This document shows positions 1 through 26,700 of a stretch of 64,000 nt of DNA, in pieces. The stretch is from Tubulanus polymorphus (taxonomy: Eukaryota > Animalia > Nemertea). Made by a program: the position numbers and the translations under genes. The stretch's first letter is position 1. Each line of letters starts with the position of its first letter. The stretch lies in NCBI RefSeq assembly GCF_964204645.1, contig NC_134030.1, forward strand, positions 18,436,210 to 18,500,209, given 5' to 3'. Under the pieces are notes generated by a model, which made no database searches, was not told the DNA's origin, and saw only the letters and a list, made by a program, of their open reading frames with translations.

Positions 1-3000
1 CATCGACTCAACAAGTTACATGTGACCCTCCAGCTGTCGTTCAAAAACTATCAAACTCTCAGTGGAATATAACGATACCTACCGTAAATAGTACCACAAC
101 TGACTATAGAGGGCGGTGTTTAGCTGACGGTAAAAATGAAAGGGTCATTGATGTCGCTGGTTATCATCACGCCGGTCCAACTGATGAACCAGGTAAGATT
201 CTACGTAGGTCAGAACTCACCGGATTTTATCTGAATGCCAGGTTTTCTGAGTACAGAATGTTACAGTTTTGTCCCTGAAGTCAAAATCAACCAACATACT
301 CTCAAAATCCTAAACCACCGATGTATATCACGGTTGATCAAATCGATTAGTTTTAGATCCAGATGGAGGTAAAGTGTTCGGTGCTGTAATCGGTGTACTG
401 ATATTACTGATTCTGATAACACTGTTTATACTGTGTCTTTGTGGCTGCTGTAAGTTTTACCTAAAACCATCATTTAATCTAAGAAAAACAATAATAAATA
501 AACTGCAGAAATAGAATACTGTATTATTTCTAATTGACAGTGCGGTACAGAAAACCCCATGATGAACTGTGTAGATGTGGAAATTGTAAGTTCTGTAAAA
601 ATTCATATACATAATGTTTAAAATTGAAGAACAGCTACATTTAAAATTGCGTACAAGGCTTCAGGGGTCCATCCAAAATTATCCACTTTCCCCTCTGTAA
701 AAACGTACTCCCCAGTGATGAAAGAGTACTTGAAGGATGGGTCACTGAGTAATAACAACGGTTGTTTGTGTACGTACATCTGTATGAACTACGCATTATT
801 AAAACAGAAAATATCATTATGTAAGATAAAACGCTGTACATTTGTGTAATAATCCTGTGTACCAGTACTGTGTTTCTATAGAAAACCTGCTGATAAACTG
901 TTTAGTTGTAATTGTCGCACCAAGAACCCCCGAATAACAGTGAACTATGTGTTTGTTGTTGCTGTAAGTTCCATAGAAAAATACCATCCCAGAATCTTAG
1001 AAAGGTTGACTGCAAAATAAAATACCATATTATTTTTTTTTTGTTTTCAGTCACTCCTTTCCGCACTACTGATGATCCAGTGGATTCTACTCAAGGTAAT
1101 GAAGATAACTACTTTAGCAACAATATTTTCCTATATCTATTACTGTATCATGAATATACAATTATTTAGATAATATATGACACCTGACTGTATTTGAAAT
1201 TGTAGCATGTTTTTATATTTTATCATAAAATAAGTTTATTCTAATGCAATTGTTTTTACATTATATAATCATACTATAGGATACGTACATGTTGTTACAA
1301 TGATTTAAATATATAAAGGACCAATGGTCCAGTGGCTCGCCAAACTGGTGTGAAGTAAAATATTTGTTATGTATAGGCTACTAGTACGCAAAAATTAATT
1401 TCATTGAAAATTAAAAAAAGAAAAATATACATGTATCAAAAAGGACTTAATTTTGGTCAGTGATAACTGACTTTTTAACGAGAATGAAATCTTCGAGAAA
1501 TTGATTATGGGAATTTTTGTCTCAACAAATTAATGTTCATTATCTTAATACATCCCTGGAATGACATATAAAACTAAATATAAACATATAAAACTATAAA
1601 ATATAAACACATAAAACTATGAGTGACCAAGTTAATGCAAATTTGAGGCCAAAAAATTTATTGCCTGACTGACATGGTTTGTAATAATTTCATTATAGGA
1701 TTGCTTTTAGTTGGCAGGCAAGCTTTACATCTTCACTCCAGACAAATCGTTGTTACGCGCGATATACACCGTAGCGCGTTTTGACTGATACATACACGCA
1801 GTGAACACGAGAGTATAAGGCGATATTGCATACGCGACTGTACACGTCTCTTTTCAACGCGAACGCTCATCACTGTGCCACGAACTAACATAAATAACAA
1901 ACTAATATAACAAACTAATTAAATAATCAGGCTTCAAAACGGATCGTTAATGCGAACGTCAATAAAATGACTTCAATTAATGATGACAAAACAATTATTT
2001 CAGTCCAGACATATCTTAGAAAATTCGATGCTATCAGCTGATCAGTATCATCAGTGAATCAGCCGTGTGGCGAACACGGAAGTAAATTTCCGCAATTTGA
2101 AACCAGAATTTTGTCAGATATCGTGATTCAACGTTACGATATGCACGGGATTTCAAAACTAGATGAATCATTGAACATATCGCACACAACAAATCGTTAT
2201 ATCATACGCCTTGAGTATAAGTATTCGCGTTAGAAATGATGAATATGAAACTCTTCAATTGTGCCGCCATTTTGTTTAGCGAAATAGCGCACTTTGCTGA
2301 TCCACCTCATTTACATATTCAACGAATGCTATGACGTCATGATGGAGTCTTTGAAAGCCCATAACTACCGAAAAAAGCGTCGGATCTTAGCGAGATAAAA
2401 TTCTTCGGACACAGATAGCATTGATTTTCACATGTGTAAATTTGGACAGTTGAAGATGCTGCATAAAAAACGTGCAAAGATAAATCGAATTTTTGAAACT
2501 TTTTGGTTGATTTCTCAAAAATATGAAACCCACGGCTTTCAACTTTGCGCACCATAAAGAAAAACAAATTACGAACTATATTTTTGCCGTTCCGTTCAAT
2601 TCGCCAATTAGTAGTGAAATCACAGGCTACTGAAATTGCGTTTGAGAGTGCTAAAAATAGCTTTGAGCGTAGTCTATTTAAGCATACGAATGATTATCGA
2701 TCGGCCAGACCGTTGACATTGCCAAAAATGTAAGAACAAGTCAGCGATGACGGTACAAAGAAAGCCGGTACTTGTGTTATGTATCACCCTAATGAGTTAC
2801 AAAAGTTAAAAGAGAACAAGTGAAAGAAAAAAGAAACAAGAAATTTAATTTAAATAAATTATTTGACGCCTGCGAAAAAATGTAGAATTTTTGGGATAAG
2901 CTAATGTGGAATTGCAAATTTGAAATCGAATCTTTTAAGAAATTTGGGGAATTATGAGATTCGGTGATTGGGCAGGTGATACAGGTCTTCGACTGCAGTA

Positions 3001-4784
3001 GTCTGGTTTAATTTTTTTATTGAAAATTGTCAATAATTGATAACTTGCGACCGACTTCATTCACTATTGCCTCTAAGCTGGTCTGCAACTTCATTGCCTC
3101 CATAGTTGAAGAAAGCGCTCTTCTGATGTCTGCTTCATCATGACTTCGAGCATATCGTGTGGCCTAGCCAGCCGGCCTGGCCGGTCACCGGCCTTGGCTG
3201 TCACTCGATAACCTCTTGAGTCTGGGTTGATGTAGACATTGTCATTTAAAATAACTTGTTTATGTTATTCTGTATGAATTACGCATGTGTCTTGTATGTT
3301 GTATTTTCTTATTTTAAAATTTGTAACTTTATTGAATTTGAACTCTATTTGAATTTTATATGTAATAAGGATCAATAAAGAATTGAATTGAATTGTCACC
3401 TAATATACGTGCCATCAGAGGACGCGGAGCCGTATATGACAGCTATGCTATTATAAATTGCTAATCTTACGAAACCTGCATACCCCTTATATCGAACATC
3501 TTCTAAAACATTTGAATATTGAAATTATATATTTACACATTTTTATATTGACCGCTTGTAGGCGCCGATGAAATTCACGCCGGCCCTACACAGATCGTAG
3601 ATAGCTTCGTAATTCCACCGGCATCCCCATGTCAGGGTCTTGCTTTTATATCAGACTTCAACATCGTGTATACATCCGCCATTTTGACCGAATAATCCGA
3701 TTTACTTATCATTTCTATTTATGCCTGCCGCTTCTGATATAATCATACATCCATTACTATCACAATACGTCTTCTAATGATATTCAATGCAATATAACAT
3801 TTCGACGTTCAAATAGAAGTCATTACATAATCACAGGAAGCCATTCTACATCTTTGTCAATAATATTTTGCCAAATAGCTTTCATGTGTACACATAGACC
3901 TGTGACGTTTTGCACGTCGATTTACGGTTGTCGTTTGTAAAATGACGCTGAATGGTTAACATTGTTTAGGTTTCATAATGGTAACGTTTTATAAGCGTCA
4001 AAAAAACAAAGAGAACTTATAGAAAATAAATCATTACAAAAACGTAAAAATATCATGAACACATTATGTATCTATAACTTAATGTGAGGAGTAATGTAAA
4101 TTGTTTGTTTTGTTAAATCCTTCCATAACTAGCGGAATTTTGTCCGCAAAATAAGCTTTGCTATATATGAACTGTCTTCCTGTGGCTTTAAGAACATTCA
4201 CTTTTATAGAACTCGAAAATTTCTAGACCTTCTTTGAAACTGATGAAGATAATTAGTTAGGTAGAATGAAATGCTGAATTATTCTTTATTCACAGTGCCG
4301 TTGAGACCAGTTGATAATGAACCAGGTGGATTTACTGATGATAATGAGGATGCCTCCTCAGATGAACTGTGTCACTGTTGCTGCTGTGAGTTCTATAAAA
4401 AATACCTTCTATGAAACTGATAAAGATTGATATTCAGTAACTGAAGAATAAACTGCTGTATTATTTTCTATTTGCAGTGATGTTAAGGAAACATGTTGAT
4501 TGTCTGTGTAGACGTGATAGCTGTAAGTTGTATAACATTAAAACTAATGATATCACACAAAATCAAACGTTGAGTTATATGATGTTTTAAGTGTTGATAG
4601 AGGGCGAAGAAATTATATCTCGAAATATATCAAAAATTAATTTCCGATTAATGTCCAAAATAACGACCATGCATCAGTGAATTTGAGATAAATGAACAAG
4701 AATTCATTAAAGCGTACGGTGTGAGCGTAGCAGGGTGAATGGCAATCTCACCCTCGGGATTGGATACTATTATGAAGACGTTTA

Positions 4785-4825
<41 letters not shown>

Positions 4826-7800
4826 GGCTTTCATGAATTATACCAATAAAGCTTTCGGGAACATAGTTATAGTAGGGTTCAGTTATCAGCGGTTAAACAA
4901 TATCAACAAGTAGTGCATGGAAGCTGGAGTTCATGGCCAGTATTGCAGTATCAGACAACCTGCATGGATATGTACATACATGAACATAAATAGAAATTAT
5001 ATAAATAAACAAGTGTGGAAGTGACGTATGTGTCTACCTAGGTAAACCAAATATGGTGCAGCCATGGACTCCGTTGAGTGCAAAAATATATTTTTAGAAA
5101 ATTGTGACGTGTGCAGACACGTCATTGCCCATACATGGATGGGAGGAATGTTGTGACGTATGAATACGTCACAAGCCATGAATTCCAAGCCATATGTGGA
5201 AGAGGACCTGCACACGTTACACAAGAGAAAGTGATATAAATAGGGAGGTTTTTGTAAGCACGAGATAGTAAAGAGAGCTACATCTGTTTACATCTAGTAA
5301 GAAGAAATAAACGAAAGATAATTTTAGAAATTGTTAAGTTATTTCTGGGAGCCGTGTAAGAAGTCAAGACCAAGGACTGAGATCTGATCTAAGAGAGTGT
5401 CCTCGCACCATCATTGAGAGGAATTATTACCACGACGCTAGTTGGACAACCCAACCCGGATTCACAGCACTGGAAGATATACGGACCATAACATAGGTGG
5501 AGAATCCATACCCACAACACTGGTGGAGAACAGTGGTGTATCCTGCACCTCTCGCTGCCAAGCGATCTAGTATATTGGTCAGTGAACACGGGGTGAAGTA
5601 AAAGTATAAGATGAACGTTACATTGCGTAACCGTAATAACATAAAATACGGGCCGCTACCGCGGGTTAAGTTGAAATATTGCGGATAACTCGATCTGTGT
5701 ATAAAAATCATTCCCGTTCAGATTTAAGGAGTAATGATATTCGGTTCCTGTCCGTAATATGCAGTTGATATCACCAGATGTACTTTGTTTTTGTGAATTG
5801 TGAGTTTCTAGTAGAGGGTGATTGTGTCTTGTGATAACTTCGAGAAATCAATGATCAAATAGAATGGTTTTTGCGAAATCGTGTTTTGGATGGTTAGGAT
5901 TGACGGCTAACGAAACGGTTTGCGAATACGAAGCGTAGTGAACTCAATTTAAGTTGATTTGATGAAATGGCGAGTGATCAAGACATTGTGCGTATACTTT
6001 GGAATCAATCGGCGAATGGAAAATCGTGCGGGAAGACGACCTTGGACAAGTTTAATGGACTCCGACCCTTGGACATAAATATAATGATGATGTATTAACT
6101 TTTGCATGCTTATACTGTATAAAAAATGTGTGTTTTTGGTTGAATCGGAAAATTAAATTGAGCGTATTATTGATATTTATTTCCAAATGCTGGGTTTATT
6201 AGATTAGATTACTACGCAGTGCTGATGTATACATCGTTGTTTGTTGCAGGCTTAGGTATTTATTCTAGGAATTTTTTTCCCGATTGTTTTACTCTGGCTA
6301 TATAGTCTATATGATGTTGCGAATGCTATTTTTGCATACGTCTTATTCATAACAGCGTTAACTCGTTCACTGCTATCATGAAGATACCAAACAAATGTCT
6401 GTGGTTATAGGTTAGGTATTTATGTTTGAGTAGTATTGTGGGTATTAGATATATGTTAGTTGTAGATAATAATTTGTGCCAAAGGAATTCTTTGGGGTTG
6501 AGCGCTCAATGGTGAAGCTTACCGGAAGGTTTTAATTGAGAGTATAATTATGAGTTTATAGTTTATGTCGAAATAGTTTTAGTGGATTTGGGAGCCCCTG
6601 ATAAAAAGAGTGAGGGATGCTCAAGGGGTAGTCCTGAAATAGGGCAGAGGTTTGAAGCTTGAGGAATGCGTAGATGATTAATTTATGTGCCAGTAAGAAA
6701 TTCGAGAGTAAAATCCCAGATGAAATCAAATTATATTCCAAGTGATTGATGAATGTTATCATTTCACCAAATGTGATATTTCACTGGATTTTCAGGTAGC
6801 AACATAGAATCATTTTCAAGTCGTTAGGGTACTTAGTTAGGGTACTCATGATTCTCGAAAAAAAAACCAATTTGTCCTTATCTTCCAATCGTCATGATGT
6901 AGTACATTTCAAATTCATTTTCATTACGCTATACGAAAGCTACCCTGCCAAAATCTAATCTTATCATAAATTTGCTATGGTGGCTGATTCAGGACAAGTC
7001 AATATTTTTTAGCCCACTTGGGACCTTAGTGGGCTATTGCGTTCACTTTTCGTCCCTCATCCGTCCGTTCGTCTGTAGACGGAATCCAGTTATTTTTGGA
7101 AGTTCTGAAGACGCTTCAAGGTAATATCTTGATATTTGGTTTACATATGTATCTACCCTAGACACATCCGCAGCCCAAAAACTGGCCCTGTCAGATTCAA
7201 GATGACCGACTGGCAACCATTGTTGTTCGCCAAAATCAGCACTTTTTACACAATTTTCAAGTTTTCGAGGGAAATTTTGAAGACGCTTTGATCAATTACC
7301 TTGATCTTTCACATATAATAATATATTTGTATCCTCTAAGGGCCCATCAGCATGAGAAAAATTGGGTCGATCGGACTCAAGATAACCGTCCTATGACCTT
7401 TTTTGTGCCCAAAAATGTCAATTTTGGCCCAAATTCTGAGTCCTGTACCTTCCTACTGGTTTGCTATTTTACATTGAACATTGTGGTGGCTATTCTATGG
7501 ATAGGGATCTTTAATAGCTGAGACAGTTATTTTTAATGCACCAATTATCACGCAATTGGCGGCCATCTTGGTGTCACCAGTACTCATTCGTAAGTCGAAA
7601 AAGGTTTTTCCACATTATATTGATATCTAACCATATTTTGTTACCACAATCAATTGTAAAGTTGTAGCTCATAATATGTTCTATCATTGTCGTGAGTTTC
7701 AAGGTCAGTGGTGTTTGTATATGGCCACCAGGGGGTGTTGAATGATACATTAACTTAGTATTTTGATATCATATTTGTACCTATGCATATTTTGTTACCG

Positions 7801-10800
7801 CAATCAAGTTCAAAGTTGTAGCACATGACATTGGTTATAATTGTGGTGAGTTTCAAGGTCATTAGTTATTCGGAATGGTCACCAGGGGGCGTTGAATAGT
7901 AGAATAACTTAGTACTTCCTTATTAGATTGGTACCTAGGCATATTTTGTTACCATGATCAATTGCTCCACCAAAAAGCGCAGAAACATAATTTTCTGCAG
8001 TTTATAAGGGAAATTTTGAAGGCGCTTCGATCAATATCCTTGATCTTTCAGACATAGTTTTATTCCCATAGGACCCATCATCATAAGAAAAAAATTGTAT
8101 TACCTAAATTAAAAATCGTATTTCACGCATAACTGGAACTTTCACTCGGCTGACGAAAAACGAAAAGAGCGATTCAGAATTTGAGGGCCTTGTTCCGGAC
8201 AAAAATGAGTTTTTTTGCCCGAAAAAAAATGATTTAAAATAAAATTTGTTTTTAGAACGCGCTGAAATAAATATTTTCTTTTAGCAAATTTTTCTTAATC
8301 GATTTGAAATTTTGAGAAATAGAAATCTCCCCAAAAATCCCAAACTGATTTTATATTTTACAGATGTTGTTAAAATTCAGAAATGTCTGAAAGAAACGTA
8401 CAAACGGATGATCGATGCTGAAAATTACAAAGAGGTTTGGTGGAGCGATAAATTCATCAATTTCAACGACTTCTTCACCCAAGAACACGCGAAAATTCGA
8501 TCCCGAAAAGAGAGAAATGAAAAATGTGAGGAACAGTCAGTGATTTTACCCGATGATTTCGAGAAGCTTTTCTCTCATGACCAGCCCGAAAAGAAGCATG
8601 TGTGCCTCGTAGGTGAACCCGGTATGGGTAAAACTACACAGATAAAAAAGCAAGTGTTGTCATGGGAGAAGTCGCCGTTTCTAATGGGGTTTCCTATGTT
8701 ATTCTATATACCGTTAAATGCTCTGCCCGCTGATAACGCTTGTATTTATACGTACATTTACGAACATCTTTTGAGTCGAGAATTCAGAAAGGTTTCGTCG
8801 GTCGATGCTTTTAAGAGATTCGTACAGGAAAATGCAGATAAATCGATATTTTTGCTAGACGGCTTCGACGGGTTGAAAAACGATGAGGCAAAGGAGGACA
8901 TCGTACACGTGACCAATGGATTACAAAAAGCGCATATCGTCATAACAACACGTGAGTCCGGGGGCAGCATGATCGTCACTGATCCCAAATACACCGTTAT
9001 ATCGATATCCGGCTTCAAACAGGAAGAAGTCATCGAAATAATGAAGAGAAAATTCCCCACGCGCGATCCAAAACAGCTATTTAACAAGCTTAGAGACGCA
9101 GCGTCACCTTTATTTAAAAGTATCTACTACAACCCGCTGATACTACATATGTTTTGTTTTCTGTATATGAACAAGGAAAAAAATTCGATGACGATTCCAT
9201 CCAAACTCACCGATATCTACATCGATTTGACATGTTTTCTGATCAATAAACGCGAGGGCATCAAGTTGTCTGAGAATTGTTTTTTTGACGACATCGAAAA
9301 TTCGGAAGCGCTTCAAGAAATTTGTCAAGTCGCGTATGAGACGCTCCTTCGGCATCAAAACAGCTTCAGCGAAAATCGTCTCAAACTCGAATCGAACATG
9401 ACGGCTTTGACATGTAAGGAGGTGTCGCCGCGACAGAAATCAGACCGCTCCGTCCAGCTGCGGTTCATACACAAATCTGTGCACGAATTTCTGGCGGCGG
9501 TCCACTCGGTCGTGCAATTCAAAAACAGTGATGAAATACCCTGGAACAAATGCGCGTTTGATCAACTACCGGATGAACTTGAAAAATATGGTGAATTATA
9601 CCCGAGATTCATGGCAGGGCTGCTGCATCGTCACAAGCGTAACCGCGGCCTCGGTGAACTGTTCAAGACTTTAATAGATAAACATTTAAAAGCAATCACA
9701 ATAGACGAGGCAAAATATGAGGATTCACTTGTATTTATAGACAGTTCCCTGATGGCGACCCTTCCCGATTATGAAAGCTTCATCGAACTCCAATCTCAAA
9801 GCTTTTGGTTACCCGATCAGTTTTCTATCTACCTGAATGAAGCTGACTGGCCGGACGACGCCATTAGTGAAATAGTTCACTGCATGGAGAAGATGTTAAT
9901 CGTAAATCGATGTAGCATGTTCAAAATGAACATACTCGCAAAAATACTCGAACACAAACAATGCCCGATCGAGGTAGTTTACATGTTTACCAACGAACTG
10001 AAACCCGACCAATTGTTCGCTGATGAATACCGCGCATTAGAAACAGCCATAGCGAGTAACACTAGTCTTCAGGGTATGGTAATCGAGATAGGCGGGGATT
10101 TTCCACCGTCAATAGACACATATAATCCGTACTTGACTTTGTGTCAGAAGAGCAACAGAATGAACTGGTTTGTGGGCCTAGATAAAGACTACATTGGTTT
10201 GTGTTACAAGAAACTCGATTGTGGATGGATTAAGACGAGTCGAGTGATTGAATCTGAAAATCAGTTGACCAGTGGTGATCCATCCACACAAAACATAGAA
10301 GAAATTTTGTCTATCAAAACTGAGGCTTTAAGTGCGAAACTTTTAAGTGATATTCAGAAATCTTATCCATCCCCAAAGCATCTGTCTCTCCGCCTGTCTC
10401 GCGATAAAGGCAAAAATATAATCGGAGAGCTGACAAGTATAGTACCGCGATTGAAAAGCTTACATCTCCAAGACGCAGGAAAAGACGAAGCAATCAATGA
10501 AAATGTGACCGGTGAAGAATTAAGAAATTTCAAGAACGCCTTAGAATGTTCAGAGATCGAAACAATTGAGCTCAATCTGAAGGAACTAACGACATATCAA
10601 TTGAAAGAAATCAGCGATGGCATCGGCTCAATGAAAAATCTAAAACGCCTTTCCTGTCACAGACTTGATTTTGAAATAAGCCGCATTCTAGATCTACGGC
10701 GGCGGCTGACTGTATTATCAATACGTTTGCGGTCAGAAGCCGATGGTAAAGCACTTCTTCGGTATCTAAAAACGGATGCGGTAAATCAGCTCCAAGAAGT

Positions 10801-11083
10801 CCGTATTAGTAGCTATCTTGAAGGAACCGAACAGCATAACGCCATCTTACGACAACTTAAACACGTTTCATCGCTTCGTAGATTAGAGTTCCACGTTTTT
10901 GAAGTGAGGTTTAATACACAGGACGATTTATTCGATATCGTCGAATTAATCGAAAATCTTCCGCACCTTTCTGACCTGTATATCATTTGCCGAGTCGGCG
11001 ACCGCGATATGATAAAAATCTACATCAAATCAAAACTTAAGGAACTCAATAAACGAGTAAGAGTACATTTAGATATTTTATAG
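1..11083 (+). CDS. Predicted membrane-anchored NLR, 5'-partial: Ig-like ectodomain exon + TM + Cys-rich linker + NACHT + LRR-like region
   Basis: Exons <1-192, 357-449, 541-585, 1051-1095, 4296-4385, 4478-4522 and 8364-11083 all have AG/GT boundaries, all introns are phase 1, and they join into one open frame. TM exon reads DGGKVFGAVIGVLILLILITLFILCLCGC. The joining of these exons to the NACHT exon is inferred. Confidence 0.65.
4788..4822. repeat. (TA)n microsatellite
   Basis: Pure TA run. Confidence 0.95.
4900..5530 (+). mobile_element. Possible degenerate LTR followed by a primer-binding site
   Basis: TATA-like tataaata (~5235) and aataaa (~5306), ending ...cacaaca, then TGGTGGAGAA (5521-5530), resembling a tRNA 3'-complementary PBS. 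No second LTR or pol found; 5' boundary uncertain. Confidence 0.35.
7005..8090. mobile_element. Non-autonomous Helentron/HINE-like element with internal tandem units
   Basis: T-run start, short hairpin agcccact...agtgggct, (tccg)-type microsatellite, and repeated ~150-170-bp units (ttttgttacc...gagtttcaaggtca...caccaggggg) at ~7640, ~7790 and ~7945. Confidence 0.5.
8364..11083 (+). CDS. NACHT NTPase + LRR-like terminal exon (NLR-type)
   Basis: Walker A GEPGMGKT (8612), Walker B IFLLDGFDG, sensor-1 VITTR, NPLIL, winged-helix FIHKSVHEFLAA, and C-terminal LxxLxL repeats (LKSLHL, LKRLSC, LRRLEF, LSDLYI). Acceptor ttttacag ends at 8363; the ORF-track start at 8312 is intronic. Confidence 0.92.
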
Positions 11084-12791: not shown

Positions 12792-13108
12792 CACAGTGTA
12801 ACAGAATTGTAGTGTACATGAAATACAGTGTAACTGAATTGTAGTGTACATAACTGAATTATAGTGTAGCTGAAATATACAGTGTAACTTAATTATAGTG
12901 TACATGAAATACAGTGTAACTGAATTATAGTGTACATAACTGAATTATAGTGTAGCTGAAATATACAGTGTAACTGAATTATAGTGTACATGAAATACAG
13001 TGTAACTGAATTATAGTGTACATAACTGAATTATAGTGTAGCTGAAATATACAATGTAACTGAATTATAGTGTACATGAAATACAGTGTAACTGAATTAT
13101 AGTGTACC
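12792..13108. repeat. Compound minisatellite (agtgtaactgaattatagtgtacatgaaatac variants)
   Basis: Direct tandem repeats visible in the sequence. Confidence 0.9.
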
Positions 13109-15917
13109 GTAGTTGAAACATAGTTTATTACTAAAACAAACTTTTCTTAAAGCTCAATCTTACAATGTTTTGCTTTAAATACAGTGTAACTGTTTGTAGA
13201 TACTTAAGACGATTTTCCACCAGCCCCCTGGCCTCACGACGCGTGATTTCATTACTGGCGCTGTCGTGCATGACGTCATATATCGATTTGCGAAATACTT
13301 CCTTGTTCGGTAAAACGTTCGCTGATTGGTCCATTTAACGGGAAACCAACAGAAGCCTAATGTCGTTTGTTACAAGCGCTGTGATTGGTACGACCGGATT
13401 CTGGTCGGCTAGTAACGACTCCAACGACTCGTGAGGTCAAGGGGTTCGGCGAACAGCTTTAGCGTAGTGGGTTCGAATCCCTTGACGGGTGAAGATGGGA
13501 TCGCCGACACTGTGAAAAACCAGGGAGATCGTGGGCTCCTGGTAAACCAGGGAGATCGTGGGGTCCTGATAAAACCAGGGTCGCGGGCTCCAGGTACAAC
13601 TTTATGCTGTGATTTGTGCTAGATATTGCTAATAACGTAACGTGCTTATTCTATTCGCTTAATAAAAAAAGAATTTATCTATAGAAATAAAGGCATTGTT
13701 TTCTTGCATCTGGGGTAGAATCGACCCGGGTCGGATGAAGTCGGCGGATGTTATAAACTGTATGCAGTGGAGATTGATTGCAGTAGAGACCCGCAGTTTA
13801 TAGAGCGAAGATGGATTATAACAGTTGGACATGTTAAAGTTAACTGACCCCAATGAAATGCGACATTTGGTTGTTTTACCATTATTGTCTTACGCGTGAC
13901 GTTGTACCATTCATCAAGAACGTAGTGTCCGATATAACCGCAGTGTTGGTTACAATCACACTGCCAGGACTGGGTGAATCGTGCCATAGACCTGTTTTAC
14001 CACCGGTACGTATATCTTCACATCTAGAGGTGTTAGTTCATCTCCCGTAAAATCAGACAAAATATCTATACTTACCTCTTGTGAATAAGTTCAACTAAAT
14101 ACAAGATGTTACTTGATAAAGGTGAGTTATTGAGGTTTCAATTTCTACTACATGTGTTAGAAATATCCTCTCTTCAGAAAGTGCTGCTACAAACACTCTG
14201 AAAATGTCTTAATTCAGGTACTTGTCACAGACCAGTTTTGGAAGTGAAGGCTGTCTGAACATGAAAGTGAAACCCTGCATGATCAGGATTAGAGGGCGGT
14301 GATGAAATATCAAATGTCTGTCACAGGGATGGACAGAGACTGCTCATCTATTGGTTAAAAACATTAGAAATAAGCTACGTACATTGTACATTGTAGGTAT
14401 TTGTAGGTATTGCACAGACTACAATGTTCATGTATCGAGTCGAATCCTGATGGTGATTGTTGCATTTTTTTCAGATGATCTCTTCTTCCTCAGGATCTGG
14501 ATGCTGCCAATACGAGCTGACGAAACAAACCCGACCGGATAGATAGGTGGTGAGTAGATGACCAGATCATAATGTGTTACATGTATCAAGTAAGATTAAA
14601 AGTTCTAATAGTAATCGTTACGTTTTTATTTCAGATCCAGCTCTTCTTCCTCAAGACCTGATTGCTGTCAATCAGTGCTGACTAAACCAACGGATACTAA
14701 ATTAGTTGTCTTCACACCTTCCTCACTTCTTCGGGACCTGATTGCTGTCATGCTGGGCGTATAAACTGCAGTTTAAATGTGCACGGTCCGATAGAAGATG
14801 ACTCCCGTGGAAATGATAATCCAGAAACTGCTCACATTAATTCGGTGAGCAGACATTTTAACTGTTTGTGGTATATAGGAAACACTTCATCAATGATACA
14901 ACGCAACTATTTGACTAGGTTTAAATCACGTTTCAACCACGTTTTTCAAAACAGTTGTTTATTTGATTCCCAGAGAAGCTTCAACTGTTTTCAAACGCTT
15001 AATTTTGTAGGGAGCCGAAAGTCAGGATATCACCGACCTGAAGATGAGCAAGGTTTACTAAACACAAGCCAACGCAAATCAAGGCGTCCAGTGAGAAGTA
15101 CCGATATTAGAACGGGTGATTTTATAACGTGTTTTGTATTAAACTAGTTTGTTTATCCGTATTTTCAATAGAATTCGTGAATCTATATTTTATTTCTTGT
15201 GTTTAGAGGTTAAATTTCAAATTATGAGCTACCTCAGGTAATTTGAATTGATTTGGTAGAGAAAAACGAATCATATAATTCTAGCTATCAATTCGTAGAG
15301 GTTAAAATAGTATGAAAATAATTCTGTTTGTTTTACTAATGTTCGAATTGTACAATATAAAACCACCGTCACGACCAATAATGAAATGATATCTAACTTA
15401 TTTGAAGAAGTAAAAATTTTGTGCCCGAATTTTTATTTTCCTCCAAAAATATCGCGATTTCAGTTAATGTTTGAGTAATCAGTGACTGTAACTACCATTA
15501 AAACTGACATAAGTTATGTAGGTTAATTCCCACCAGTTGTTGCCACGGCAACGAATTATGATGTAATCTTTTTGTGAAAAATGAAGTTTAAAAACGAGTT
15601 ATTTTTTGGAATTCAAACAGAATGAGACGTGTTTGTCTCCACTGTTTTAGGCGGTATTTTGAGTGACGATTCCATTCGATCTTTCATCAAAATCGACAAT
15701 ATACATAGTTTGTATCAGTAGGCTATACTTTCAATAAAATAAGTTAATTATGATTCTAAATGTTATCTGTCTTACTTTTCTGTGGATGAATTTGTTTCGA
15801 AGGATATACGTAAATAAAATGATGAATGCGATCAGATCTAAACCTTGTCATCTTCAAAGTGCGCGGATAATAAGGTTCGAACCTGATTTCGCCGGATCAG
15901 AGAACATTTCCCGAGAC

Positions 15918-15972
15918 TAGACTGGTTTCCTTTCCCATTCAATATGGAAGATAGAGACCGGTAACCAGTCTA
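15918..15972. mobile_element. Tiny Mutator-like MITE, copy 1 (55 bp)
   Basis: TIR tagactggtt...aaccagtcta; flanking direct repeat ttcccgagac at 15908-15917 and 15973-15982. Confidence 0.7.
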
Positions 15973-15993
15973 TTCCCGAGACGAACTGCCATG

Positions 15994-16053
15994 TAGACTG
16001 GTTACCGGTCTCTATCTTCAATACCATATTGAATGGGACAGGCAACCAGTCTA
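15994..16053. mobile_element. Tiny Mutator-like MITE, copy 2 (60 bp, opposite orientation)
   Basis: Same TIRs; 9-bp flanking direct repeat actgccatg at 15985-15993 and 16054-16062. Confidence 0.7.
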
Positions 16054-16583
16054 ACTGCCATGCAAAGGAGTGGTTGTAACTGATTGTATTTTATACAGAC
16101 ACGTTTACAATATTATATAGTTCACGGTCAGCATTATAGCAACCATTACTGACAACATGTTTTGGAAGAGCATTTTTGCGGCCGTAAGATTTTTCTTTTC
16201 TAAGGCGAATTTTCGACTTAAAAACTTTGTCGCAAATCATACATAAATCTTAACTGTGCATCAGTTATTTCATATTCCGGCGGTAAGTATGCGCTGTTAT
16301 CTTAGTTCACAGAAATTCCGCTATCGTTATTCATAGGGGCAGCACTGAACGGTTCTAATTTAACACAGCCTCGCTATTCTACTGTGGCATGCGAGGAATA
16401 CAGATATTTTCGTTATCATTACCGTGCAACGCTAGCTAACTTCAAAACATAGAAGTGTCAGCTTACACTTCTTTGTTCAGAATAATCCGTAAATACAGCT
16501 TTTAAAGTGATAGAATCATCCTAACGAGTAAAATCCCACAATAAATGTATTAAATGATAAATGTTTATTTAAAACATATAAGA

Positions 16584-16985
16584 AATATTTCTGATGGTTA
16601 CTACCAACCTTCTTCAGTCTAAAATGACTTGCCAAATAAACACACGGTATTAATACATGAAATAGGATACGAATCGCTGCGCATTACGTTACGGGGACTA
16701 GAGCACTGACATATCTGGAAAGAAGTTTAGTATGGGGGCTGAAACCATTATTGAGGTTGACAGAACGATCGGAATGAGTGGTAATCAAAGCAGATTCAAC
16801 TATGTCGTTTAGTGCGACCACTGTTGGGAAAAATAATATTGGCTCCAGAAAAATCAAAATTGTGTCCGGTAACCAAAGAATGAGAAACTACCCTACTTTC
16901 TAATTTGACCCCATTGAATACATCTCGTTTATGTTCTTTAATATGTTCCTTAATATTCCTACCAGTTTCCCCAACATAACGTAAT
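16584..16985 (-). mobile_element. Penelope-like element 3' remnant (GIY-YIG endonuclease fragment + degenerate hammerhead)
   Basis: YVGETGRNIKEHIKEH...HSLVTGHNFDF is typical of Penelope GIY-YIG domains; CTGAAGA...GAAAT lies downstream on the minus strand at 16584-16618. Confidence 0.75.
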
Positions 16986-17707
16986 GTATTTTTTAAAGTA
17001 TTATAGAAATTAATCTTTTGTGTGCTTTTTTTCACAGTTATCAACGAGGATAAAATGAAGAGTGAAAGAATTGATGATTTTAATTTAAATCGAAGATATT
17101 TCTGCGATATTACAAGGCCTGCAGTTAGTTTGATTTGATAAGTAAATTATTTTCTTCTACCTAAAACAACTAACAGTTAACAGACATTTTAATTCAAAAT
17201 ATCATAGATAATCGATTATTTATTGATCGAAATTTATAATTGATAAATAATTCCAATAAACGTAAGAAATATTTTAGAGCATGTAGTTTTTAGCGAACTC
17301 AATTTTTTCTGAATCTAAATTTGAAAACATTATTATTTCTAAATCAATTGAGATGATAACTAATTCAAATCAAATAATTATCAAAACAAATTGAGTGTTT
17401 TGAATAACTTAACTTTTAATATTGTTTGAATAATAATGAAAGAATAATTAACTTAAATCAATATAACTGCAGGCCTTATCGCGGCAATATCATTCATGAC
17501 TTCATGAAAGGAACTATCGGCTGCTACGATCAGCTCAGAAAGGTCCGACACTTTTTTTCATCAAACGTTTTTACTTTTCGCTTCCTCCGTTTGCTTAAAC
17601 GCTCGGATATATTAAACATTATCAATCCATCATCGAAGTATTCTGTTAAACTTCCTCAACCAGAGCGATTATTGTAATAGATGTGAATCAATCCTTTCGA
17701 TATCACG

Positions 17708-20700
17708 ATGACGAAGACAAGTTTGTTCTTAATAATCTGCACAGTTTTACTATTGGGAAACTTATACATTGCAGAAACATCTGGTGCTAATACGAATGAA
17801 ATAAGTAAGTTACTGCGGCCTCCGTTACTCGCCTTAGTAATTATATTTCTATCGGAATTGCGAATTCAACCGATGACGTCAGAGTCAGTGCCGTAGAGAT
17901 TTGTCACAGGCCCTATTAAATGTTACTGACAAAAGATAATCAGAAGATTTACAAACTATGGCGGAGAGTCTGTCTGACTCCTACGAGCAATTATCTAATC
18001 TAAGTTAGATAATCGCTCGGAGGTCTGACTCGCTGATTTGACCGCAAACATGATTATTAACGAAATTACGGACCAAAACGTCGCACGAAGAGCAGGTGTG
18101 ACAGACAGTAGTTGCCAATAAGGGCATGCGAGACTAAAATTTGATTTTCAGTAATAGCAGCGGCGGCCACATTAAACACAACCAACGTATATTGAATAAC
18201 AACAATTTTATATGATAGTTTGACTGTGATTTAGTTGGTAAAGACAATGGTTTTACAAGCCTACGTTACGTGGTTGCAAAATTGGGCTTGAAAATGTGAT
18301 ATTCGTGCAGTAATTTTCACCAAGAATCTGATGGTTACACGGGATCGTAGAGCTTCAGAGATATCCCTAGAAACAACCAGTATCAGGGCTGGGTGAAGCA
18401 GTAATTACGATAATTGAAGAAATCTCAAACTTCTAAATTGTACTGATAGAATTTATTATTTTGAAACCACAACGTTTCGGCTGTTGATAAACAGCCATCA
18501 TCAGTAATGACGATGGTGGTCATATTGAAAAACCGCTATATTTCAAATGTAAGGGGTGATCTCGATTGAATCTATGGATTTACTTTTTCCTTTGGCCCTA
18601 AGGGGACCATGCCAAAGGGAAACTCCAGAAGTGGTGTTTATTTGACAGATTCGGTGAATGGGCTCCGTCATCAGTAGATATGGGGCAAAATCATTGTGAA
18701 CGATTTTGGAATTTTCATAATTCAAGAAATATATTGATACGGTTTTAAGTAAATACTTCCTCGATTTATCCGCTGATTATGTGTCAAGAATGCGGGCAAG
18801 CTAATGACGCAATTAGCGGAGATTACTGTATTCATTCGTGATGATTTATCTTGCACTTAGCTAGCTGTTAGAAATATCCAAAGTCTATTTTGTCATTTGA
18901 AACTGTTACCCAGTTGTGTTACCCAGTTATTGAATAGTTATGGTATGTATAGTTTTTATACGGTATACTGACTTCAGTCTGTTATAAGTGTGAATGATTC
19001 AGTGTACTTTATACTTGACTTACCCCTATAAACTGTACCTATATAAATATCTGTTGACTGACCACAGAGAGTCCCAGCCACAGTACTTTAATAAATGTAC
19101 GTGCTTTGTAATATTATACGTCTGGAGTCGTCGTTAGTTTTATGGGTTTTAGTTCGACCCTGGAGCTTGGATCCGAAAAAGAATTGGGTATTTCGGCCCT
19201 GGAGTTTCATCCGTAACAGAAATTGGGGGCTCGTCCGGGAGCCACGGACTTTGAAGACGACTTTTTGCACATTTGGACGTGTTTATGGCAGAACCAATGA
19301 AACGAGGAAAAGTTTTTGCAGTACTTCTGTTGTTATCTGTGCTGTTTTATAAAGGTACTGTACCGTTTCATATTTGGTATCGTTTTGGGCTCGTAGATAT
19401 GTTGCCCTCTGTGGAATCGTTTATTGATTCGCCAAGTAGCGAACAAATTGAGACTTTACGTAAAAGTGAATTAGTTCAGCTTGCTGAGCATTATAACGTC
19501 TCATTTAGAAAATCACAGAAAAAGGAACATATTAAACTCTGTATTATAGAACATTGCGTCAAATCTGGTCTTTTAAGCGACGTTGAAATGCAGCAGGCGA
19601 TTCCTGAGAAGACAGAAAATGAGGCCGGAGAAACGGAAGCTACATTAATTCGTAGAATGGAGCTCGAGTTCGAAGCGAAGGAACGAGAACGAGAACGCAA
19701 ACACCAATTAGAAATCAAACGTCTTGAGAGTGAACATCAGCTGCGCTTTTTGGAGTTGGAGTCACGTGCTCCGCAAGGCTTTCCGGCACATAGGAATGAG
19801 TTCGATGTCACTCGTCACATACGTCTAGTACCGAAATTTCAAGAAGCTGAAATAGATAAGTACTTTTTACATTTTGAGAAAGTAGCCAATAATCTAAAGT
19901 GGCCTAGAGAGTGTTGGACATTGCTACTCCAAAGTGTTTTGATTGGAAAAGCTCAAGAAGCATATTCATCTCTCTATGCCGAAGAAAGTGCTGACTATGA
20001 TATAGTTAAGACTGCTATATTAAAAGCTTACGAACTTGTACCGGAAGCTTATAGACAGAAGTTTCGTAATCGAAAAAAATCTCCCAATGAAACATATGTT
20101 GAGTTTGCCAGAGAAAAGGAAACGTTATTTAGTCGTTGGTGTGATTCAAAAGATGTAAAAGACTATGATTCTTTGAAACAATTGTTGTTAGTAGAGGAAT
20201 TTAAACAATGTATTAATAGTGATATTAGAACATATGTCGATGAACAGAAAATAGATAGTTTGTCAAAAGCTGCCAGCTCTGCTGATGATTATGCTCTGAC
20301 ACACAAAATCAGCTTTGAGTCAAGTTCTGCTAGTAATTTTCCGGCTTCGGATTCTCGAAATGTGTCAAAATTTCAAAGAAATTTCAATAATCATAGTAAT
20401 ACGCAAAATTGGACTCAGAGTAGAAGAAATAAAGGTATTTGGTGCAATTACTGTAAAAAATCCGGTCATACTCTAAGTACATGTTTTTCTCTTCAGAAAA
20501 AGAATGAGAGGGGAGAGAACCAGAGATCAGAGACAAAACCGATCGGTCTTACAGCAACTCAACGTATTAAATCCAACCCTGCAGTTCAACCATTGTATAG
20601 CAAGAGTTATAATCCATTTATAGTAGACGCTTTATTGTCATTCGAAAGTACCGATGAACCAGTGAGTATTAAATTACTTCGCGATACGGGTGCCTCTCAA

Positions 20701-23700
20701 ACTTTAATGTTGGAGAGTCTTTTACCGTTATCTGGTAGTACTTTTATCGGTGAACATGTTCTCATTAGAGGAGTAGGTTCGGAAATTATCAAAGTTCCAC
20801 TCCACAGAGTTTATCTGGATTCTGATTTAGTTCGCGGTTCTGTAGTTGTGGGCGTTCAGTCGTCACTACCTATTTTGGGTGTATCTATGCTCCTCGGTAA
20901 TGACTTGGCTGGTGGTAGAGTACACATTAACCCTTTAGTCACTACAGATCCTCTACTTAATGTAGATACTGAAAGTTTAGAGAAAACATATCCTGGAATT
21001 TTCCCATCATGTGTAACTACTAGGGCTATGTCGCGATGTGCTGATTAGATAATGGGATCTAAGCCCTGTTTAGAAAACAAAGAGTTTTCTAATGAAATGG
21101 TAGATTCGTTTCTTGGTCGAATTTTTGACGAAACGTCTACCGGTTTCATTTCACCTAATAAAGATGTATCATCAAGGTCAAACCTTATTGATTTGCAGAA
21201 TGTCGAACCAGAGTTCAAGACATTTTTAAATTCTGCTTCCGATTCAATTGAATCATTAACTGGTACTCCTTCTGGATATTATTTTCAGTCTGGAGTGTTG
21301 ATGCGTAAATGGCGACCTCCAGATATTCCAGCAAGTAATGAATGGAAAGTTTATCATCAGATAGTTGTTCCAACACCATATCGGAATGATATTTTAAGTT
21401 TAGCTCATGAAACTTCGCTTGCTGGTCATCTGGGAGTCACCAAGACTTACAACAAAGTCTTAAATCATTTTTTCTGGCCTGGTTTAAAGCGTGATGTTCA
21501 AAATTTTTGTGCATCCTGTCGACCATGCCAGGTGTCTGGTAAGCCTAACCAGATAATACCCCCTGCACCTCTTATTCCGATTCCAGCGTTCGGGGAGCCG
21601 TTTGCAGAGGTTATTTACGATTGTGTAGGTCCATTACCGAAAACTAAATCAGGGTTTCAGTATTTGTTGACAATAATGTGTAAAGCAACACGTTTCGCTG
21701 AAGCTATACCGTTAAGGAATATAACTGCACCACTTATCTGCAAAGCATTGGTTAAATTTTTTACGCTGTTTGGGTTACCGACATCGGTGCAGTCTGATCA
21801 AGGTTCGAACTTCGTATCCAATATATTCCAACAGGTTATGTATCAGTTAGGAATTAAACAAAATATTTCTAGCGCTTACCACCCTGAATCTCAGGGAGCT
21901 CTTGAACGTTTCCATCAGACCCTCAAAACAATGCTTCGAACATATAGTACACAACATGAGAAAGATTGGGATGAGGCAGTACCATTTCTACTTTTTGCTA
22001 TGAGAGAAGCAGTTCAAGAATCCCAGGGATTTAGCCCTTTTGAGTTGGTATTTGGTCACCAGGTTAGAGGTCCATTAAAACTAATTAAAGAAAGATGGCT
22101 TGATAAAACTGATGAAATTAATTTGTTAACATATATTTCCAATTTCAAAGAACGGTTGTATTCTGCATGGGAATGTGCTCGTATGCACCTAAAGCAAGCA
22201 CAGGGACGTATGAAAACCTGGTATGACAAAAAAGCTCGTAATAGAGAGTTCAAAAAAGATGATAAAGTTTTGGTGTTATTTCCATTGAAAGGTCATCCGT
22301 TTAAAGCTAAATTTCATGGTCCGTATGTAGTGCAAGAAAAAGTGAACGATGTGAATTATATTGTTTCAACGCCTGACCGTAGAAAAGCTACTCAATTATG
22401 CCATGTTAATATGTTGAAACGTTACATAGATCGTCCACAGTCTGTCGGTATGATTTCAATTGCTGAAAATAATTCTAATGAAATATGTATTTCAAATTAT
22501 ATTGAAGATCCATTGCATCTAGAATCTGATTTCGATAGTTCTAAATTAGTTCCTATTGCACCTGGTTTCAATAACAGCAAGGCAATAAACAATATAGATG
22601 AAAAAGTTTGTCATTTGGGTTCAAAAGAAAAAGATCAATTATTGCAACTTATTAACGACAATAAGCATCTTTTTACAGATCAACCTGGTCTAACATCTTG
22701 GGCATCTCATGATGTCGATGTTGGGGATGCTACTCCTATCAAACAGCATCATTATAGAGTGAACCCACAAAAAGGTGAAATTATGAAACAGGAGGTTATT
22801 TCTATGATTAAAATGGCCGTAGCTGAGCCTAGTGAAAGTGAGTGGAGTTCTCCCTGCTTGCTAGTACCCAAACCTGGAGGTAAGTGGCGTTTTGTAACTG
22901 ACTTTAGAAAAGTCAATGCTGTGACTAAGTCTGATAGTTACCCAATGCCACGAGTCGACGATCTTATTGATCGCATTGGCCGAGCCAAATATGTCAGTAA
23001 ATTCGACCTAACAAAAGGGTACTGGCAGGTACCTCTTTCTGAAAGAGCTAAAGAAATAAGCGCTTTTGTGACCCCTGACGGATTATTTCAATATCGTGTA
23101 ATGCCTTTTGGCATGAAGAATTCTGCCCCCACCTTTCAGCGGTTAATGAACAAAGTAGTGCGCGGGCTAGTATGTGTTGTAGTATATTTGGATGATATCA
23201 TTGTTTTTTCCGACACTTGGGAAGAACATCTACAACAAATAAAAGATCTGTTTCATAATCTCACCGAAGCTAATTTAACTGTTAATTTAGAAAAAAGCGA
23301 ATTTGGTAAGGCCACAGTTAAATATCTAGGCCATATAGTGGGACAAGGTCAAGTACGCCCCATAGATGCAAAAGTCAAAGCTATAATTGAGTATTCACCA
23401 CCTTCTAACAAGCGTGACATCATGCGTTTTTTAGGAATGGCGGGATACTATAGAAAGTTTTGTAAAAATTTCGCACAAGTCACTGTTCCTTTGACCGAGT
23501 TGCTGAAAAAGGATGCAAAATTTGACTGGAGTGAAACTTGTGAGAAATCTTTTCAATCGGTAAAACATTTGTTGATGTCAACTCCTATTCTCGCAGCTCC
23601 AAATTTCGATAAACAATTCAAGCTTACTGTTGACGCCAGTGATTCGGGTGCTGGCGCAGTTTTAGCTCAAGATGATGATGACGGTTTGGAACATCCTTTG

Positions 23701-26700
23701 TGTTTCTTTTCAAAGAAGTTTGTAGCTGCGCAGAAAAATTACTCGACAATTGAGAAAGAATGTCTGTCTATAATCTTAGCTTTGGAACATTTTGATGTTT
23801 ATACAAGAATGAAAATCTTTCCAGTAGTTATATTTACAGATCACAATCCATTAACTTTCTTGTACAAGATGCAGAACAAGAATAAGCGTCTCATGGCTTG
23901 GAGTGTGATATTGCAGTCGTATGACTTAGACATAAGACACATTAAAGGACGCTGTAATGTGGTTTCAGATGCCCTTTCGCGCTCATAATATCATGTAATA
24001 ATTAATGTGTAATGTATTGTTGAAATATTCCGAATTGTTGTGATCTGAAGATTAAATATGTGTTTGTTTGTATTTTTGTCGAATTTTGTAGAATGTATGT
24101 ACATGTATTTTTTCTAGAAATACATCTCTGAATCTTTTAAGGGTGAGGGTGTTACCCAGTTGTGTTACCCAGTTATTGAATAGTTATGGTATGTATAGTG
24201 TTTATACGGTATACTGACTTCAGTCTGTTATAAGTGTGAATGATTCAGTGTACTTTATACTTGACTTACCCCTATAAACTGTACCTATATAAATATCTGT
24301 TGACTGACCACAGAGAGTCCCAGCCACAGTACTTTAATAAATGTACGTGCTTTGTAATATTATACGTCTGGAGTCGTCGTTAGTTTTATGGGTTTTAGTT
24401 CGACCCTGGAGCTTGGATCCGAAAAAGAATTGGGTATTTCGGCCCTGGAGTTTCATCCGTAACAAAACAAATAGGGGGCCCGTGATAAACTCTGAAAAGA
24501 TATCGCCATATCTCCTCCAATGACTTATAACATTATAAAGTGCAAAAGTCGTTGTAGTTTAGGCAATGGATTCTTCTCTCCTGACCAATACTGCTTATCT
24601 TTTGCTATAGTTTCACTACATGTGGCCTCCACCGAGCACGGGACATGTTTAGTTAGCGAAAGACTGGCGTTTGAACTCCCTAAAAGACCCGAAATCCTAG
24701 AAACATGCGTTGCGTAACATTTACTGATTTATTAAAGGATTCTCTTATATTCCATTCCGTCAATCACAGATTTACTACAAATTCTAAAACATATTTCTAG
24801 AGACGATTCGAGTTCAGCGACCGGCTGTTCTAATAGTCGTCTTTTCATTAACGAGTCTTACAATGCTTGGATGATGAAATGTAAACATTATTCTCTCACA
24901 GCAGAGGCCAGCTTGTCTTACAGACGTCTTTTCATAAACGAGTGTTTTTAACTCTTTACGTGCTAACTTTCTTAATTTCAGATCGTGCTAACTTAATTTT
25001 TTAAAAAAGAATTTTCAAAAATAACGGGTTTTCATACTTCTAGAGGGTCTAATACCCTTCCCTAAACTCAAATAGGATAACATTAGTTTCAAATTCTAAG
25101 AAGAGCGTCGCGTTTTCTAATAATCGATTTTTTATGGACTTTTTCTGGAAAACTGTTTTTTATATTTAGTTGTGAAACCACCGCGAATGAAGTCCAGATA
25201 TCTGACGTCACGGCTCCACAATGCCCTCGTTATCCCGGAGATCATCGAAGAAGAGATACACATTACTAGACGGAGCGAAGGTAGAGAGACAGAGAGATGA
25301 GTTTAAAGACGACCTGCTCGATAATTTAATGTTTGGGGCCCAAATATAGCGTGGATACTAAGATTCTTTGTGTGGTGAATTACCGCTCTGTTTATACCCC
25401 TGGGGGTGGTATTAACTTAAACCCGGGAGACTTACTCAATTAATATTCAGTTAAAATTAGGTTAAAATTCCCTATCGTTATTTAAACATAAGGCGGACGT
25501 TGCATCCAATTTATTGTCTCCACGTTTTTGTGGAACTCTTTGGAAAATTGATCTGAACAAATTTAAACACAGTCTGATCTTTATAACCATGATACAGCTT
25601 TTACTATGAACAATTTTTTCATACAAATTTAAAGATTTTTATCATCATTACTTAAGTTGAAATATAAAACCAGTAACTGAATGATTGACATAATCTGAAT
25701 ATGTTTATTTACAGACGGTCTCCCAGTGATCGCTGATGCATCGGGGAATGATTTAATGAATTATGAGGTGAAATTGAATGAAGGAGAATCAAAAACTTAC
25801 ACGTGTAAACACGATAAAGGGAGAATAAACTGGGAATATCTATTAGAAAATGATGATGAGTGGAAACTTTATTCATCCGAGAAACAATTAACAATCCGTG
25901 GCGATATGACACTCAATAAATCACAAATCAGATGTTTCTCCAGTATCGGAAAGTCCGTGAAAACGTCAGCAAATGGTTTAAAAGTAACAGTTATTCCCAA
26001 GCCTAAAACTACACCGGGTGACCCTACTGGTAAGTGTAAAAGGCGGGAGAGCAGTTTATAGATCCCCCTATGACGTCATTAACACAATCAAGCATGTTTA
26101 AGTGTATAATTTTTCTAGGTGCGGCTCGGAGCTGGAGGCGAGTAAACGACACGACTGTTCATATGATATACAATTACAATGTAAAAACAACTGTCACGTG
26201 TAAATGTGGTAACGATGACGCAATACATGCTACTAGACTAACCGGAAACACGTGGTCTATTCAGATCCCCGATAATAAAACCTGCACGTATAAATGCACT
26301 GATAACTTTAATATAGACATCGAAAACAAAGGTTTGTACATGATAATTATTCTGAATATATAGTTCTCGAATGGCCGCTAGGAGTGCTGATTTGTTTATG
26401 TTTTCAGATGATACTGGTCGATATTTCAAGAACTGGCGAGTTGAAGGTCGAGTGGTGAAATGGACCGCGCAACAACCTGGAATCGTGTTCACTGTTGCCC
26501 ATCGTTTTAAAGCTAACAATCGATTCCTCAGCGACGGAAATGTCGCGAGCGAAGCTGTTAACGATCAAATGAGTTTAAATTTGACGTTTCCGACAAATTT
26601 GACCGGAAAAGTGGCAGTTATTGTGAAATTCACGTGGAAACATGGTGCAACAACCCGCAGCATGGAAAGAGAATTTACCTTTAAAATCGGTAAAGATGGC

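Follow-up and report, generated by a model that had tools for sequence, protein, structure and literature searches.

Nucleotide-binding, leucine-rich repeat (LRR) receptors (NLRs) are usually regarded as cytosolic sensors, and paired immunoglobulin (Ig) receptors as a vertebrate-style arrangement, exemplified by the KIR, LILR, Siglec and CD300 clusters and by the NITR genes of fish. Plants have NLRs with integrated decoy domains, as well as guard/guardee pairs. Signalling tails with YxxM and YxN motifs are known from CD28, DAP10 and CD19. Here, we describe a locus from the nemertean worm Tubulanus polymorphus in which an NLR gene with a predicted extracellular part is followed, on the same strand, by two receptor genes with tyrosine-rich tails, which we call receptor A and receptor B. 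The window, i.e., the whole stretch of 64,000 nucleotides that was analyzed, is contig C6:18436210-18500209. We consider it likely that its genes represent two lineage-specific receptor families lying side by side, built from interchangeable phase-1 exons, and that exon shuffling accounts for the Ig module they share. A receptor of comparable layout, AjNLRC4 of the sea cucumber Apostichopus japonicus, has an extracellular Ig domain, a transmembrane (TM) segment near residue 480 and a cytosolic NACHT domain near residue 600, and was reported with two TM segments and no LRR (PMC8699970). The Ig-TM-NACHT receptor type is therefore already known, from sea cucumber; a literature search found no paper on such genes in nemerteans.

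A d3-type Ig domain common to two receptor families

Family 1, as reconstructed, would consist of a signal peptide, an Ig domain (d1), a second domain (d2), another Ig domain (d3), a small Ig-like domain (d4), a TM segment and a Cys-rich juxtamembrane part. It is predicted to end either in a giant exon encoding NACHT and LRR-like regions (window gene, P0002, P0004) or in a short Cys-rich tail (P0015-P0020). Family 2 would consist of a signal peptide, an ectodomain, a Thr-rich stalk, a TM segment and a tail rich in YxxM and YxN motifs. The predicted ectodomain of family 2 takes one of two forms: a single d3-type Ig domain (P0028, P0030-P0036), or three domains, D1-D2-D3 (the window's two genes, P0021, P0027).

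The single-Ig receptors provide the clearest connection between the families. The tail exon is matched about 70 times across the genome, and a word search with the tail gave the RefSeq proteins P0028 and P0030-P0036, all with the same type of signal peptide, a single Ig domain, a Thr-rich stalk, a TM segment and a YMDM-repeat tail. The Ig domain of the P0036 type is 51% identical to d3 of the NLR P0004 (E 3e-30), and that of P0034 is 43% identical to NLR-family d3 (E 8e-20). In stalk, TM segment and tail, the single-Ig receptors are 54% identical to receptor B (E 8e-54); their ectodomains give no BLASTP alignment with that of receptor B. Because they combine a d3-type Ig with a stalk, TM segment and tail of the receptor B type, these proteins bridge the two families.

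The three-domain receptors of the window are connected to d3 through D1. In an all-against-all hhalign comparison of seven local domain profiles, d3-D1 was the top pair (probability 66%, P 5.8e-5), followed by d4-D2 (P 0.0078) and d1-D1 (P 0.012), with all other pairs above 0.06. A second run put d3-D1 at a probability of 62% (P 7.4e-5), with 58 columns aligned between strands B and F. The d3-D1 score of 30.2 compares with 11.6+-2.4 for shuffles (z 7.7) and was reached by none of 152. In addition, two-domain profiles built on RefSeq proteins form a single colinear alignment of 119 columns (P 0.009). Taken with the d3-D1 match, this alignment means that d3-d4 corresponds in order to D1-D2, which gives a higher prior for kinship of d4 and D2, not a proof of it. 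We conclude, at the level of sequence, that D1 of the window receptors is a diverged d3 and that a d3-type Ig exon is common to both families. A first reading of the window, made from its letters alone (the sequence-only reading), had proposed that one ectodomain module was shuffled either onto a phosphotyrosine tail or onto an NLR. That proposal holds by way of d3 and D1, and not by way of d4 and D2, the pair on which it had been founded. Homology between d3 and D3 was also considered, with a Smith-Waterman z of 3.9, but was rejected at an hhalign P of 0.19.

Probably interchangeable exons

Family 1 ectodomains are found with or without NACHT. Of the 29 d4 exons in the genome, about 5 are followed, on the same strand and within 16 kb, by a NACHT exon. 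An array of twelve genes at 21.69-22.09 Mb has no NACHT exon; its RefSeq models have short Cys-rich tails, and some of them lack single domains or have them duplicated. Many NACHT exons, in turn, bear unrelated N-termini. On the family 2 side, D1-D2-D3 is found with a YxxM tail or with an ITIM-like (immunoreceptor tyrosine-based inhibitory motif) tail. The latter occurs in P0022, which has D1-D2-D3 preceded by three extra N-terminal Ig domains, a different TM segment and the tail motif SVYGEV. In a divergent subfamily (L012-L015, C6:20.43-20.52 Mb), one exon resembles d3, another resembles d4 (~50% identical) and the TM exon is Gly-rich; tail-like exons lie 2-3 kb off on the opposite strand, in convergent orientation.

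Exon shuffling, or unequal recombination among tandem phase-1 exons, probably brought the shared Ig module to both an NLR chassis and a phosphotyrosine-tail one. The ectodomains would likely bind extracellular ligands, and the output would likely be either NACHT oligomerization or the recruitment of SH2 domains through PI3K/Grb2-type motifs.

Several points weigh against this account. First, the gene models for the window were built on RefSeq paralogue models and splice-site logic. Second, the Ig assignments are uneven: d1 and d3 pass the Pfam cut-off (Ig_2, 29.2 bits; C2-set_2, 22.5 bits), but no Pfam Ig model matches d4, D1, D2 or D3, and the d3-D1 hhalign probability, at 62-66%, is below 90%. 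Third, the d4-D2 resemblance falls short of significance in every test after correction, and a divergent d4 paralogue scores worse against D2 (Smith-Waterman p 0.15). Fourth, a signal-peptide exon for the window NLR was sought up to 20 kb upstream without success, and RefSeq returned no protein for this copy, which may therefore be truncated.

Structure of the NLR gene

The window opens within the NLR gene, the remainder of which consists of the following exons:

1..192, + strand: the 3' 192 nt of the ectodomain exon d4, encoding a small Ig-like, membrane-proximal domain (translation)
357..449, + strand: transmembrane exon, phase 1-1 (matches P0004 447-477; splice sites; hydrophobic stretch)
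541..585, + strand: Cys-rich juxtamembrane exon (matches P0004 476-490; splice sites)
4296..4385, + strand: cytoplasmic linker exon (85% identical to P0004 509-541; splice sites)
8364..11083, + strand: terminal exon of 2.7 kb, encoding NACHT, a helical region and a weak LRR-like C-terminus (Pfam domain scores)

The full d4 exon (L001:1423-1692; 270 nt, phase 1-1) starts 78 nt before the window and is cut by its start; it is 92% identical to P0004 residues 353-441. The exons for d1, d2 and d3 are situated upstream of the window. Altogether, the window NLR and P0004 are colinear, exon by exon, for 8 exons. P0004 and a second RefSeq paralogue, P0002, both run from a signal peptide through an Ig domain, an unassigned domain, a second Ig domain and d4 to a TM segment, a Cys-rich linker, NACHT and a weak LRR-like end. 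The NACHT domain in the terminal exon is well above its threshold (PF05729, 55.7 bits; cut-off 26.7). LRR_14 scores 19.1 bits on the C-terminus of the window gene and 16.9 bits on that of P0004, both under the cut-off of 40.

The best paralogue of the terminal exon is 69% identical. Against the nearest paralogues, the NACHT exon is 65-69% identical in protein and the ectodomain exons 78-92%; judged by these identities, the cytoplasmic module is diverging faster than the ectodomain. The genuine d1 exon is immediately preceded by a tandem array of 4.8 copies of an 82-bp unit (L005:5104-5496, ~4.5-4.9 kb ahead of the window), each copy consisting of a splice acceptor and the first ~20 codons of the NLR's d1 exon. 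In a paralogous block (C6:22280000-22289000), 3-12 such copies precede each of several d1 exons.

Structure of receptors A and B

The two tandem genes after the NLR each encode a signal peptide, D1, D2, D3, a stalk with TM segment and a tail with the motifs YEDP, YMDM, YMST and YMNP. Their exons, and an element inserted in receptor A, are as follows:

17708..17788, + strand: receptor A signal-peptide exon, 6.6 kb past the NACHT stop (82% identical to P0021 1-28)
18904..24464, + strand: long terminal repeat (LTR) retroelement in intron 1 of receptor A (SCAN, integrase, reverse transcriptase and RNase H domains)
25715..26029, + strand: receptor A exon D1, encoding an Ig domain diverged from d3 (match to the d3 profile by hhalign, probability 62-66%, P 6-7e-5)
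26119..26331, + strand: receptor A exon D2 (translation; beta sandwich in the AlphaFold2 (AF2) model, with a predicted local distance difference test score (pLDDT) of 82.5; no Pfam match)
26408..26728, + strand: receptor A exon D3, Cys-free (90% identical to P0022 534-641; no Pfam match, no known family)
27801..27913, + strand: receptor A stalk and TM exon
28479..28937, + strand: receptor A cytoplasmic tail exon, with YEDP, YMDM, YMST and YMNP motifs
31285..31371, + strand: receptor B signal-peptide exon (100% identical to P0027 1-29)
32946..33263, + strand: receptor B exon D1 (RefSeq model P0027)
33351..33560, + strand: receptor B exon D2 (translation; 100% identical to P0027 172-241)
33636..33959, + strand: receptor B exon D3 (RefSeq model P0027)
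34900..35007, + strand: receptor B stalk and TM exon (RefSeq model P0027)
35611..36069, + strand: receptor B tail exon (100% identical to the P0027 tail; motifs)

P0027 is the RefSeq model of receptor B and takes up the D2 exon exactly. There are 8 copies of the D2 exon in the genome. The tail of the window receptors matches no Pfam family. Receptors A and B are 77% identical in D1 (25715-26029 vs 32946-33263) and 96% identical in D2 (26119-26331 vs 33351-33560). Both genes also have a short exon (25166-25231 and 32410-32475), which encodes the fused remains of two Ig domains found whole in P0022; in receptor B this exon forms part of the RefSeq model. The P0021 locus (C6:22240299-22244060) is without any D3 exon, and D2 is therefore membrane-proximal there, like d4 in the NLR. 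The LTR retroelement in receptor A retains long intact open frames (SCAN-type gag, integrase, reverse transcriptase, RNase H) and has matching ends. In a paralogous block the element is absent and its flanks abut.

Are d4 and D2 related?

The sequence-only reading had begun with a resemblance between the d4 exon of the NLR and the D2 exons of the receptors, and much of its description was accurate. Frame 3 of 1-192 and exons 26119-26331 and 33351-33560 translate as it said, and both kinds of exon end in phase 1 at canonical splice sites. Its written consensus motif, on the other hand, fits neither peptide ungapped and describes a gapped alignment only, and the likeness did not prove significant. 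Exon phase was rejected as evidence for kinship: all ectodomain exons of both genes are phase 1-1, and phase is therefore uninformative for this pair.

Two explanations of the resemblance have to be weighed. D1-D2 could have arisen by copying and divergence of the entire d3-d4 block of an NLR-type ectodomain, making d4 and D2 true homologues; we regard this as a possibility of somewhat less than even weight. Alternatively, the resemblance could be due to chance together with the constraints on small disulfide-bonded Ig-like sandwiches (V-T-C in strand B, x-I-x-I in strand E, Y-x-C in strand F), with D2 and D3 coming from elsewhere; to this we give an even chance.

Direct comparisons of the two domains are weak throughout, as expected if only general constraints are shared. 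BLASTP gives no d4-D2 alignment at E<=100. The Smith-Waterman score of 42 compares with 27+-5.2 for shuffles (p 0.015); its z of 2.8 is no better than that of other local Ig pairs (3.1 for d1-d3, 2.6 for d1-D1), and divergent d4 copies match D2 less well. With the exon families, hhalign gives a probability of only 3-5% (P 0.008-0.013) over 26-29 columns, and 5 of 200 column shuffles equaled or exceeded the observed score. A generic Ig pair, d1-D1, already reaches P 0.012. Hidden Markov model (HMM) cross scores between d4 and D2 are 3.5-4.5 bits, which places them 6th to 13th in a set of 1849 open six-frame segments from the local DNA, most of which are non-coding. Profile scans of the whole genome, a check that the sequence-only reading had proposed, gave no cross match at E<=10. 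Sequences intermediate between the two did not turn up. Searched with the D2 profile, 1.84 billion representatives yielded two real clusters only, both bearing D2 itself; the four remaining matches are low-complexity artefacts.

Order and reciprocity are better accommodated by a copied block. The domains d4 and D2 stand in the same order as the supported pair d3 and D1, and each is the other's best match among the seven local domain profiles (hhalign, P 0.0078). The D2 HMM picks d4 in register in 8 of 8 d-family proteins, with single-test P values from 0.00025 to 0.03. In each block, moreover, the d3-d4 exon pairs lie ~20 kb upstream of the receptors.

Predicted structures are consistent with both explanations. 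The AF2 models of d4 (7 strands, pLDDT 68) and D2 are compact Ig-like sandwiches with the same order of 6-7 strands. The cysteines of d4 and D2 are separated by an identical and unusually short 32 residues; this spacing and the modeled 7-strand order would set the pair apart from d1, d3 and D1, which speaks for a copied block and against chance. Of the 50 top structural matches, 11 are common to the two models. The wider matches are nonetheless generic for both, in Foldseek as in VIA, and against the PDB neither model has a Foldseek match with an E value under 0.04. Sequences in the PDB, searched with profiles, returned noise only, and a language-model atlas returned weak leads for D2 (<0.9) and no usable match for d4. 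As a sequence match, d4-D2 is inseparable from generic Ig-fold similarity. Membership of the two exon types in one ectodomain family, as the sequence-only reading had it, is not significant by sequence, and we remain more doubtful than confident that D2 truly descended from d4. The sharing of a d3-type Ig between the families, our preferred account, is carried by d3 and D1.

Linkage of NLR and tail receptor

An NLR followed by a same-strand tail receptor is found in at least four intact blocks and two decayed ones. The intact blocks are:

Window: NLR, then the D-type receptors A and B
18.35-18.38 Mb: P0004, then the single-Ig receptor P0032
22.29-22.23 Mb: NLR, then three D-type genes
22.31-22.29 Mb: NLR, then a single-Ig receptor

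This recurrence raises the question of whether the NLR and the receptor downstream of it are a functional pair, i.e., a sensor with a decoy, guard or co-receptor that meets the same ligand through related Ig modules. Some features of the layout speak for it. The spacing from the NACHT stop to the signal-peptide exon of receptor A recurs in two other blocks, such that a D-type signal-peptide exon lies 6.2-6.6 kb past the NACHT stop in three mapped blocks (one of them with a decayed NACHT). In two blocks with a single-Ig receptor, the signal-peptide exon lies 8-9 kb past the stop. Furthermore, the partner always bears a d3-type or d3-derived Ig.

Block duplication, however, explains the linkage, and the partner's Ig is no nearer to the d3 of its own NLR than to the d3 of others. 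By blastn, the window and the 22.2-Mb block are colinear, and their DNA identity changes in a step at ~15.5 kb of the window: it is 80-90% along the NLR and 93-97% along the receptors. The step indicates that the NLR and receptor parts have separate histories, which argues against a functional pair. With introns and intergenic DNA counted in, identity is ~80% upstream of ~15500 and 97% downstream, which suggests that the receptor part alone underwent conversion recently or was duplicated later. Most d-family and tail-family genes, moreover, are unpaired. We therefore think it very improbable that the linked genes are functional partners. Only slightly less remote is the broader proposal of a conserved two-gene unit, in which d3-d4 and D1-D2 would read the same ligand class and differ in output, with NACHT oligomerization on one side and PI3K/Grb2-type phosphotyrosine signalling on the other. 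If true, such a unit would be a paired-receptor system with an NLR as one partner.

Other features of the window

Two further regions lie beyond the receptors. The open frame at 49534-50328 (- strand) has a match to Lig_chan, the family of ligand-gated ion channels (E 1.6e-21), and probably belongs, as one exon, to a gene for an ionotropic glutamate receptor. At 42274-45015 (+ strand), a run of long overlapping open frames of up to 296 aa, without a Pfam match, may be a mobile-element remnant.

Significance and comparison with known systems

The exon pair d4-D2 adds little by itself. What the locus offers is a single type of Ig exon used, in one cluster, on three kinds of chassis: a NACHT protein predicted to be membrane-anchored, membrane proteins with short tails, and receptors with YxxM tails. 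It illustrates concretely how a recognition module facing the outside of the cell can become coupled to a STAND ATPase through shuffling of phase-1 exons. The genes also provide matched natural chimeras in which to study the action of a NACHT domain under extracellular control.

The signalling tails resemble those of CD28, DAP10 and CD19 in their motifs only, without sequence homology; the repeated YMDM, YMNP and YIDM fit the SH2 consensus of PI3K p85 and Grb2. The likeness to plant NLRs with integrated decoys is that the NLR bears a domain homologous to that of another host protein encoded nearby. Unlike in plant NLR pairs, the shared domain is extracellular, and the downstream neighbour, in tandem on the same strand, is no NLR itself; the window locus has no head-to-head NLR pair of the plant type.

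AjNLRC4 is similar in layout and approximate positions to P0002, P0004 and the window gene, a comparison of layout and not of sequence. The worm proteins differ in having one predicted TM segment, a Cys-rich juxtamembrane part and a weak LRR-like C-terminus, and the description of AjNLRC4 mentions no sharing of its Ig with tyrosine-tail receptors (PMC8699970).

The modular arrangement resembles that of vertebrate paired receptor clusters, with tandem, related Ig ectodomains placed on different signalling tails by exon shuffling and duplication. In the worm locus, one of the outputs is a complete NACHT/LRR-like STAND module instead of an ITIM or a charged TM segment, the shared domain is 43-51% identical instead of near-identical, and activating or inhibitory roles can be suggested from motifs only. 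As in paired receptors, a homologous ectodomain domain occurs here in genes with different cytoplasmic parts.

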